From the NCBI RefSeq assembly GCF_033153115.1, contig NW_026889750.1:50220001-50284000 (forward strand): a stretch of 64,000 bases of DNA. Reading direction: 5' to 3'. Each line of letters starts with the position of its first letter. Positions within the stretch are counted from its first letter, which is position 1. Shown piece after piece: positions 1 to 1,623 of this stretch. Made by a program: the position numbers and the translations under genes. The stretch comes from Saccostrea echinata. Its lineage: Eukaryota. The notes below the pieces were generated by a model, which had not been told where the DNA came from, searched no databases, and was given only the letters and a program-made list of their open reading frames with translations.

Positions 1-1623
1 AAATAAAAGCCCATGCATTCATCATGGACCCAATACCCACAACGGGCACGGTCACACCCAACCCAATGTCCACGTTCCTGTGTTGTCAAACAGACATTGC
101 AAGTTTCAGGAACTTTTGTCGTTATTGTTTCAGTCTGAGTGCATTTGGTCTTGCATACAACTATCCTTCTCTTCTTTGAAGTCTGATATCCATCTGATCT
201 CTTTTCCTTTTCTCCTGATTTAGAGTTAGTTATAGGGGGGAGAAAAGTAGGTTGAGGAGATGGAAACGAAGGAGAGGGAGAGGCAAGAGAAGGTTGTGGG
301 GAGAGTGCATTTAAAGATAGTATAGGAGGTATTGACGAGGTAGAACAGTGTGGGGTTGAGATAAGTTCAGCAGAGGTAGAAGATGAGCAATTCGTAGTAA
401 TAGAAGAGGAAGAGGATATCGAAGTTGTTATAACAGAGGGCGGTGCGCTAGGAACGTTAGAGGGGGGAGATTTTATGATTCGCTGCATGTGCTGAAATGT
501 ATAATCAATGCGTGTTTTAAAATTAAAAAAAAGTAATAAAAAAATTTCAATCCAACCACTTCTTTAAATAAATAAATAACTTATTGAATGAGATTAATAT
601 ACTAACATCTTCAAAATAAGGTGTGGCATACGTGGACATTTTTCCAGATGCTGATTTCACAATAATTAATATTTCACTTTTACTTGTAAGATGGANNNNN
701 NNNNNNNNNNNNNNNNNNNNNNNNNNNNNNNNNNNNNNNNNNNNNNNNNNNNNNNNNNNNNNNNNNNNNNNNNNNNNNNNNNNNNNNNNNNNNNNNNNNN
801 NNNNNNNNNNNNNNNNNNNNNNNNNNNNNNNNNNNNNNNNNAACATGAAATCCCAATTGAACATAAGGGACTCCAGTGATGATACAATTTTCCACACCAA
901 TCTTGAAAATGAAATATTTCAGTGGCGTTCAGAACTAAGAGCAGCAGAATACCTCTCCAATCCCTTCTCCTCCACCGATCATACTTCTCTATGCAACAAA
1001 TCACTAGATAAAGAACTCGTAAATTTTTCCCAGAAATGTAAAAACAATAGACAACATTATATTCAAGAAGTTTCTAAAAATAATTCAGTCAAACTCTCAC
1101 TTTCTCTAGAACCAATTTTTTTTACAAGTTTGGAACGCACACACTTTCATTCTATCGAAAGTAGAACAAAACCAGAAATAGCAGCCAAGATTGAGGAACA
1201 GATTGAGAAGCTACTTGATTTGGATTTTGAAGCTGGTATGCATATATAAAATTTTCAACATCTTTAAAATAATCATACGTATCGGCATGTTTTGCTGCAT
1301 TTTTTTTTTTTTTTTTTGGTTAAAAAAGGAGAAGACAGAAAAGTACAATGGAAAAGAGACATAAAGAATGGTGGCAAAAAAATGTATATTAATTTCTACA
1401 AAGAATTATTAGAAGTTGTAGAAAGTTCGCAAGATGTGATGAAGGACGAAGGTACGTTATATATTCATACCTTTTTCAAGATTGTGGTTTTTCTCTTGTA
1501 CACGGAGTCGTGTCGCTTTTTTGCATCCTCTATGTATGTACTGGGCGTAGGTCCAGATCTTGACAAGCCCCTCTTCCTTTGACCTTTGTTATTTTTCCCG
1601 GGATTTACTTTACTATTCTGCAT
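1..1623 (-). CDS. Spliced gene encoding a divergent SRF/MCM1-type MADS-box, Ser/Pro/Thr-rich linker and PHD finger (3' end off the window; exon 2 starts inside the N gap)
   Basis: Exon 1623-1471 reads MQNSKV...STYIEDAKKRHDSVYKRKTTILKK|gtatga. Exon (gap)695-607 reads HLTSKSEILIIVKSASGKMSTYATPYFED|gttagt. Exon 491-<1 follows ttcag in phase 0, is open throughout, and ends CNVC..WVGCDRARCGYWVHDEC (PHD). The MADS part aligns without gaps to SRF FIDNKLRRYTTFSKRKTGIMKK..LSTLTGTQVLLLVASETGHVYTFAT. Confidence 0.75.
696..841. other. Assembly gap (N run)
   Basis: Run of N; true size unknown. Confidence 0.99.

Follow-up and report, generated by a model that had tools for sequence, protein, structure and literature searches.

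A recently mobile cut-and-paste DNA transposon of the oyster Saccostrea echinata carries, interleaved with the gene for its putative transposase, an unannotated gene for an SRF-type MADS-box DNA-binding domain fused to a PHD finger. We found this combination in no paper on mobile elements, and the encoded protein is probably the element's own DNA-end-binding or chromatin-targeting helper, although this function is inferred. The gene was detected at the left edge of a 64,000-nucleotide stretch of genomic DNA (hereafter the window; assembly GCF_033153115.1, contig NW_026889750.1, forward-strand positions 50,220,001 to 50,284,000). A reading based on the sequence alone had proposed that three minus-strand exons encode a captured and diverged SRF-type MADS domain plus a PHD finger, which serve as a DNA-binding and chromatin-reading accessory protein of a transposon. 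Our analyses confirmed the exons and support their carriage by a DNA element, whereas the functional part of that proposal remains an inference. The gene has three exons and about 270 codons, and its features are summarized in Table 1.

All visible exon junctions of the gene are in phase 0 with clean GT/AG borders. In a Pfam search performed exon by exon, exon 1 hit positions 1–22 of the 48-position SRF-TF profile (PF00319; 16.4 bits, E 0.006), the visible part of exon 2 alone gave no hit, and the part of exon 3 inside the window hit PHD with 19.1 bits. The complete exon 3 scored 26.8 bits for PHD (PF00628; cut-off 24) and 26.4 bits for PHD_NSD (cut-off 23.9). The spacing of the finger is C-x2-C-x11-C-x4-C-x4-H-x2-C-x15-C-x2-H, with His as the last ligand. 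As exon 1 alone is below the Pfam cut-off of 26 bits and would not survive a window-wide correction for multiple testing, the assignment to the MADS family rests on relatives of the gene. Paralogous exon 1 sequences hit profile positions 1–22 (up to 28.3 bits) and paralogous exon 2 sequences hit positions 23–48 (up to 20.9 bits), and the spliced database homologues P0025 and P0029 scored 47.8 and 39.7 bits, respectively, over the whole profile. The acceptor and first codons of exon 2 lie in a masked stretch of the window, and paralogues start exon 2 directly after AG. To assess whether the two sides of this stretch belong together, only spacing and N counts were used. The 20-mers flanking the N run were 146 non-N letters apart in the genome copy of the same locus and 128 letters apart in another copy (C45), and in all three copies of the element both flanks lie inside one element bounded by terminal inverted repeats (TIRs). 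The two sides are therefore continuous.

Table 1 Features of the transposon and its genes in the window. Positions count from the first nucleotide of the window; C1, genome contig carrying the window.
Feature	Position	Strand	Description
Transposon	1..2481		Right-hand 2,481 bp of a 6,165-bp TIR transposon; the rest lies left of the window, at C1:50216317-50220000
Right TIR	2247..2481	-	Identical to the left TIR for 235 bp; tip reads CAGGTCCAGC
Target-site duplication	2482..2486		5 bp, CTTAA
Subterminal array	2392..2456		Seven AGCTAT half-sites: two AGCTATATAGCT palindromes (GC(W)6GC, CArG-like), one pair spaced by 5 bp, and one single half-site; mirrored in the left TIR
MADS-PHD exon 1	1471..1623	-	51 codons from ATG; basic arm and first half of the MADS domain, ending in KK; donor AAG|GTATGA
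MADS-PHD intron 1	694..1470	-	Acceptor and about four codons of exon 2 lie in the masked stretch
Masked stretch	696..841		Written N in the window
Last coding exon of the putative transposase	842..1249	+	135 visible codons plus stop; antisense inside MADS intron 1; missing from the NCBI model P0008
MADS-PHD exon 2, visible part	607..693	-	29 codons; second half of the MADS domain (beta hairpin) and TP.FE tail; donor GAT|GTTAGT
MADS-PHD intron 2	492..606	-	GT at 606-605, AG at 493-492; phase 0
MADS-PHD exon 3	1..491	-	Starts after TTTCAG; 181 codons, continuing 51 nt left of the window to a stop at -54..-52; S/P/T-rich linker, basic patch, TQT motif and PHD finger
KKRR patch	165..176	-	Basic, NLS-like
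KCTQT motif	132..146	-	In the linker
PHD finger	1..101	-	C4HC2H spacing; last 15 codons lie just outside the window

Several lines of evidence place the domain closer to SRF than to MEF2. In a PDB sequence search (phmmer), SRF (2.7e-6) ranked above MCM1 (4e-5) and MEF2 (7.5e-3 or worse). Exons 1 and 2 aligned without gaps to the exons of the oyster's own SRF gene, and the KRK..KK contact residues are kept, although the N-terminal arm of the MADS domain has an insertion relative to SRF. The phase-0 intron after KK, which the sequence-only reading had tentatively placed at the end of SRF exon 1, is present at exactly this position in the host SRF gene and absent from the host MEF2 gene. The AF2 model of P0029 has a long helix (52–85) followed by a hairpin, and its 46 best Foldseek rows are all MADS structures. 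A homodimer model of residues 228–312 of P0025 scored 0.75 against a best control of 0.01, a mark that was reached by 21 of 30 proteins solved as pairs and by 0 of 23 solved as single chains. The runs agreed in at least 82% of contacts and the pLDDT of the partner was at least 74. However, solved SRF dimers exist, so this result may reflect these known structures. In place of the C-terminal activation region of SRF, the protein has a linker and the PHD finger. A basic K/R run stands at the place of the KKRR patch in relatives too, and K-[S/C]-TQT-[E/A] is conserved in at least seven diverged relatives within an otherwise variable linker.

The element has perfect 235-bp TIRs. Three copies that are at least 99% identical sit at unrelated sites with different flanks, each with its own 5-bp target-site duplication (TSD), those of the other two copies being CAAAG and ATTAA. 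The end is not a TTAA end as in piggyBac, TTAA being part of only two of the three TSDs, and no piggyBac domain was found. A decayed copy (C30), which contains stops, has one box deleted and is truncated at its left end, gave no footprint information.

The second gene of the element encodes a divergent DUF6589 protein, the putative transposase (P0008). The two genes converge and interleave, as the last transposase exon lies in MADS intron 1 while MADS exons 2 and 3 lie in the last transposase intron. Open frames 58–59% identical to this last exon were found at the same antisense position in paralogues, and within single ORFs of 1041–1045 aa the exon lies C-terminal to the P0008-like part. P0008 itself had no Pfam or NCBIfam hit, but three of 11 members of its family and a 1054-aa relative hit DUF6589 (PF20231; best E 6.7e-5 and 2e-5), and the language-model neighbours of P0008 were DUF6589 clusters at 0.90. 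A second language-model search that left out DUF6589 gave only 0.78. The transposase role is itself inferred. The AF2 model of P0008 is poor (pLDDT 59), Foldseek and a PDB profile search found nothing, and the conserved D239, D416 and GH.E motif are candidates only.

Contrary to a recent capture, the link between the two genes is old. Exon-1 paralogues stand at 15 or more loci, most of which lie next to P0008-like ORFs in the same interleaved order, and this architecture recurs in at least eight diverged families. The same gene pair occurs in S. cucullata, where P0011 and P0025 come from contigs of the same length (165,187 bp), probably one contig. MADS-PHD proteins also exist in echinoderms. 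A profile search for more MADS-PHD proteins added nothing new, and cluster look-ups of PHD-side hits returned unnamed Logan, ENA and JGI entries, leaving the range beyond Saccostrea, Patiria and Amphiura unresolved. The gene pair appears to be under purifying selection, with a dN/dS of 0.09–0.13 where dS is defined, although dS was saturated when exon-1 and PHD codon columns were pooled. Animal genomes are usually considered to hold two MADS-box lineages, SRF and MEF2. In this oyster, however, most MADS-like loci found (15 or more, against three host loci) belong to a transposon family, and domain scans miss them because the domain is split by an intron. The interleaving of two genes on opposite strands is a rare way to keep a transposase and its partner from being separated, and an active-looking, low-copy element with a separate targeting subunit is also of interest as a genetic tool for bivalves.

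Of the 17 AGCTAT half-sites in the element, 14 lie in the outer 90 bp of the two TIRs. The array is conserved in two other families, although the proteins of these families are only 58–63% identical, and one site shows a symmetric C-to-G / G-to-C change on both arms. We consider it most likely, with a confidence only slightly better than even and without expression or splice evidence for this copy, that the MADS-PHD protein is an accessory subunit of the element. As a MADS dimer it would bind the palindromic GC(W)6GC boxes near both ends, where it would either mark and bridge the ends for the transposase or drive the inward-reading promoters next to each TIR. The PHD finger would tether the complex to histone H3 tails (the only PDB hit to BPTF had an E of 0.7), and the TQT motif may recruit the dimerising hub LC8. 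While we are highly confident of the identity of the gene and its carriage by the transposon, binding of the element's own ends is about as likely as not. The box differs from the canonical CC(W)6GG. Furthermore, one site has its half-sites 5 bp further apart and one half-site stands alone, which fits a monomeric half-site reader, such as the Cys/His-rich N-terminus of the transposase, at least as well as a MADS dimer of fixed geometry.

Alternatively, the protein may mainly be a transcription factor of the element, which binds the boxes in the TIRs and switches both genes on or off as an autoregulator or copy-number control. Both TIRs sit directly upstream of the two convergent genes, the boxes are identical at both ends, and MADS proteins are classical promoter-binding factors. 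We regard this as the less likely reading, but nothing separates it from end-binding for transposition, and both could hold at once. It is more doubtful that the array is read by the N-terminal domain of the transposase, while the MADS-PHD protein competes or pairs with host SRF at CArG boxes, or steers insertion to marked chromatin through its PHD finger alone. The variable spacing, the lone half-site, a conserved C.C..H ... C..C pattern in the P0008 N-terminus, and the SRF-like dimer interface and helix contact residues favour this scenario, whereas the palindrome-preserving double change at one site argues for a symmetric dimeric reader and the two perfect 12-bp palindromes have CArG geometry. 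That the gene is a mere passenger, a host SRF fragment fused to a PHD exon, is very unlikely. The shared intron position would be expected for capture at the DNA level, but the gene is kept intact with the same exon structure in families diverged to 43–63% identity and across species, with a dN/dS of about 0.1 and a conserved linker motif and interleaved layout, and passengers decay. A chance resemblance to MADS, or a junction of unrelated loci at the N run, is refuted by the full-length homologues, by the collinear flanks in three copies, and by the agreement of profile, sequence and fold searches, despite the weak scores of the single exons.

Literature searches found no report of a transposon-borne MADS gene, and the finding adds MADS to the short list of transcription-factor DNA-binding domains shared with mobile elements, alongside THAP, BED, WRKY, Myb and Paired. 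Like PIF/Harbinger transposons, which encode a transposase plus a Myb-like protein, the element carries a second gene for a DNA-binding protein and repeated subterminal sites as candidate targets. However, its TSD is 5 bp rather than 3 bp, no DDE_Tnp_4 or Myb domain was found, the accessory domain is MADS plus PHD, and its genes are interleaved on opposite strands. Transib and ProtoRAG elements, with RAG1-like plus RAG2-like genes, share the 5-bp TSD, the TIRs and two convergent genes, and the accessory protein ends in a PHD finger as vertebrate RAG2 does. Here, the tip is CAGG (CAGGTCC) instead of CAC, a MADS domain replaces the kelch propeller, and no RAG1 core match was obtained in Pfam or PDB profile searches, a RAG1_imp_bd hit of 13.5 bits in a distant relative being treated as noise. 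The only long structural match of the P0008 model was the P element transposase (PDB 6p5a; Z 5.4, rmsd 5.5, 240 residues, model residues 205–611). This match is weak, there is no THAP or GTP-binding domain, and the TSD is 5 bp, not 8 bp.

DUF6589 has no described function, with one passing mention in the searchable literature, and the mobile elements bounded by TIRs and TSDs offer a first functional context for this family. Tentatively, DUF6589 proteins could be the transposases of an unclassified superfamily of eukaryotic cut-and-paste elements with a 5-bp TSD and CAG tips, one bilaterian branch of which recruited an SRF-derived MADS-PHD protein as a dimeric end-binding, chromatin-reading subunit. 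This would represent a third, transposon-borne class of animal MADS-box genes and a functional parallel to RAG1/RAG2, with two genes locked together by mutual nesting of exons in each other's introns. A comparison of two further loci (L036 and L039) revealed a collinear duplicate and gave no element boundary, but a distant relative element also has a 5-bp TSD and a CAG tip, in two copies.

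On the minus strand, three coding pieces with canonical junctions were identified, and all visible junctions were phase 0 (coordinates are listed in the table below). Reading of the same contig to the left of the window revealed the end of exon 3, which completes a finger with the spacing C-x2-C-x11-C-x4-C-x4-H-x2-C-x15-C-x2-H. The acceptor and first codons of exon 2 lie in a stretch written as N in the window. Based on distances and N counts only, the 20-mers on either side of this stretch lie 146 letters apart, none of them N, in the genome assembly's copy of the same locus, and 128 letters apart in a second copy of the element on contig C45, an 18-letter length difference. 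In all three near-identical copies of the element, the parts to the left and right of the stretch are collinear inside one element. Hence, we conclude that the two halves of the MADS domain belong to one locus.

Coordinates of the features of the element, its surroundings and the compared host loci. Positions are those of the window unless a contig (C) or a separately extracted stretch of the genome (L) is named; C1 is the contig of the window, and L009 is a stretch containing the NCBI model P0008.
Feature	Position	Strand	Details
Transposon	C1:50216317-50222481		6,165 bp; ends at window 2481
MADS-PHD gene, exon 1	1623-1471	-	51 codons from an ATG; GT donor right after a KK pair
MADS-PHD gene, exon 2 (visible part)	693-607	-	29 codons; GT donor at 606
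MADS-PHD gene, exon 3	starts at 491	-	follows a TTTCAG acceptor; 181 codons; stop at window -54..-52
Stretch written as N	696-841		
NCBI model LOC133201813 (P0008)	-3002..-789 (L009:3998-6211)	+	628 aa; short read-through tail at window -789
Last exon of the putative transposase	842-1249	+	135 codons
(TA)n microsatellite	L009:5384-5455 (window about -1616..-1545)		long; in the first intron of the putative transposase gene
Small ORF starting in each TIR	2209-2334 and L009:3464-3655	- and +, respectively	41 and 63 aa
Distantly related element	L035:455-9613, L040		9.16 kb
Host SRF gene	C2:16157401-16158300		
Two host MEF2-type MADS exons	C2:12027777 and C2:12077659		74.8 and 74.6 bits
Dispersed repeat	~4425-5000		roughly 570 bp
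Nanos homologue	31291-31998	+	235-aa ORF
ORFs without Pfam hit	12507-13358, 24957-25703 and 2646-3002	- (all three)	283, 248 and 118 aa

When the exons of this copy were searched one by one, exon 1 matched positions 1-22 of 48 of the SRF-TF profile (16.4 bits, E 0.006), whereas exon 2 alone gave no hit. This result alone would not survive correction for scanning a 64-kb window. However, exon-1 equivalents in other elements of this genome hit positions 1-22 (up to 28.3 bits), exon-2 equivalents hit positions 23-48 (up to 20.9 bits), and the S. cucullata protein P0007 hits positions 23-47. Two spliced database proteins of the family, P0025 and P0029, pass the curated cut-off of 26 bits over the whole profile (47.8 and 39.7 bits, respectively). 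A sequence search of the PDB with P0025 ranked SRF (2.7e-6) above MCM1 (4e-5) and MEF2 (7.5e-3 or worse). The window exons align without gaps to the exons of the oyster's own SRF gene and keep the KRK..KK helix residues, although the N-terminal arm has an insertion. A structure model of P0029 shows the long helix plus hairpin, and its 46 best Foldseek rows are all MADS structures, with SRF first. A homodimer model of the P0025 MADS region scored 0.75 against a best control of 0.01, a mark that was reached by 21 of 30 proteins solved as pairs and 0 of 23 solved as single chains (agreement between runs in at least 82% of contacts, pLDDT at least 74). Because SRF dimers are solved, this score shows likeness rather than binding.

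In paralogous elements, exon 2 starts directly after an AG with A-K-E-L, and the intron therefore falls between KK and A.EL in phase 0. The host SRF gene has its intron at exactly this point and phase, whereas the host MEF2 gene reads straight through it. This confirms the sequence-only reading, which had tentatively placed the end of SRF exon 1 at this position. Together with the ranking of SRF as the first match, the shared intron points to descent from an SRF-type gene at the DNA level. The complete exon 3 passes the cut-offs for PHD (26.8 bits) and PHD_NSD (26.4 bits). A basic K/R patch and the motif K-[S/C]-TQT-[E/A] recur in diverged relatives inside an otherwise variable S/P-rich linker, and LC8 binding and nuclear import are inferred from these motifs.

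The TIRs of the element are identical for 235 bp and begin CAGGTCCAGC. Three copies that are at least 99% identical are located on contigs C1, C25, and C45, with unrelated flanks and the TSDs CTTAA, CAAAG, and ATTAA. These are real, recent insertions and not assembly duplicates, and the end is not a TTAA end. A decayed copy lies on contig C30. Each TIR also holds the start of the same small inward-reading ORF, which may be due to chance or may represent a 5' exon or leader of the two genes.

The partner gene on the plus strand is represented by the NCBI model P0008, which has no Pfam hit. Three of 11 family members and a 1054-aa relative hit DUF6589, and the protein language-model neighbours of P0008 are DUF6589 clusters at 0.90. 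The structure model of P0008 is poor (pLDDT 59), and its only long match is P element transposase at Z 5.4 over 240 residues. DUF6589 gives more than 100 six-frame matches in this genome. One distant relative is an element with 33-36-bp TIRs (tip CAGTCAAGTCC) and a single ORF of 1041 aa, which likewise has a CAG tip and 5-bp TSDs (TTATA and GTAAA in two copies) but no MADS-PHD gene. We therefore read these proteins as the putative transposases of an unclassified group of elements, although the catalytic residues are not established. In the literature searched, DUF6589 has one passing mention, and no paper on a transposon-borne MADS gene was found.

A plus-strand frame inside MADS intron 1 is open and conserved at 43-59% identity at the same antisense position in other families, and in single long ORFs of distant relatives it lies directly C-terminal to the P0008-like part. 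It is therefore the last exon of the putative transposase, which the NCBI model appears to lack. The two genes are thus interleaved, with MADS exons 2 and 3 in the last intron of the putative transposase gene and the last exon of the latter in MADS intron 1. The microsatellite in the first intron of the putative transposase gene may be a hotspot for length variation between copies.

Exon-1 relatives at 43-63% identity occur at 15 or more further loci, most of which lie next to P0008-like ORFs and PHD exons in the same order. In contrast, a genome-wide SRF-TF scan found only three host loci over the cut-off. Two MEF2-type MADS exons lie 50 kb apart on contig C2, which suggests a tandem duplicate of MEF2 in this oyster. 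The dN/dS ratio is 0.09-0.13 where dS is defined, and dS is saturated elsewhere. MADS-PHD proteins also exist in S. cucullata, the starfish Patiria miniata (two 99% identical genes on two chromosome-scale contigs), and the brittle star Amphiura filiformis.

Fourteen of the element's 17 AGCTAT half-sites lie in the outer 90 bp of the two TIRs, where they form two AGCTATATAGCT palindromes (a GC(W)6GC box with CArG geometry), one pair spaced by 5 bp, and one single half-site. The tip and the whole four-site array are conserved in two families whose proteins are only 58-63% identical. In one of these families, a site has changed from C to G on one arm and from G to C on the other, which keeps the dyad. 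Clusters of the half-site also stand upstream of exon 1 in other paralogues. A symmetric reader is therefore likely, and the MADS dimer is the obvious candidate, but the variable spacing also fits a monomeric reader such as the N-terminus of the putative transposase. Taken together, the observation made in the sequence-only reading, a hidden gene for an SRF-type MADS box and a PHD finger, is confirmed, and its interpretation as a gene carried by a DNA element is supported in its structural part, whereas the mechanism (end binding or TIR-promoter control by a MADS dimer, and chromatin tethering by the PHD finger) is inferred.

Outside the element, the window contains a dispersed repeat that is unrelated to the element, has more than 40 copies at 87-94% identity across many contigs, and is probably a SINE or MITE. 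Three further ORFs gave no Pfam hit, whereas an ORF about 29 kb from the insertion contains a Nanos zinc-finger domain (zf-nanos, 91.9 bits) and is a nanos homologue.
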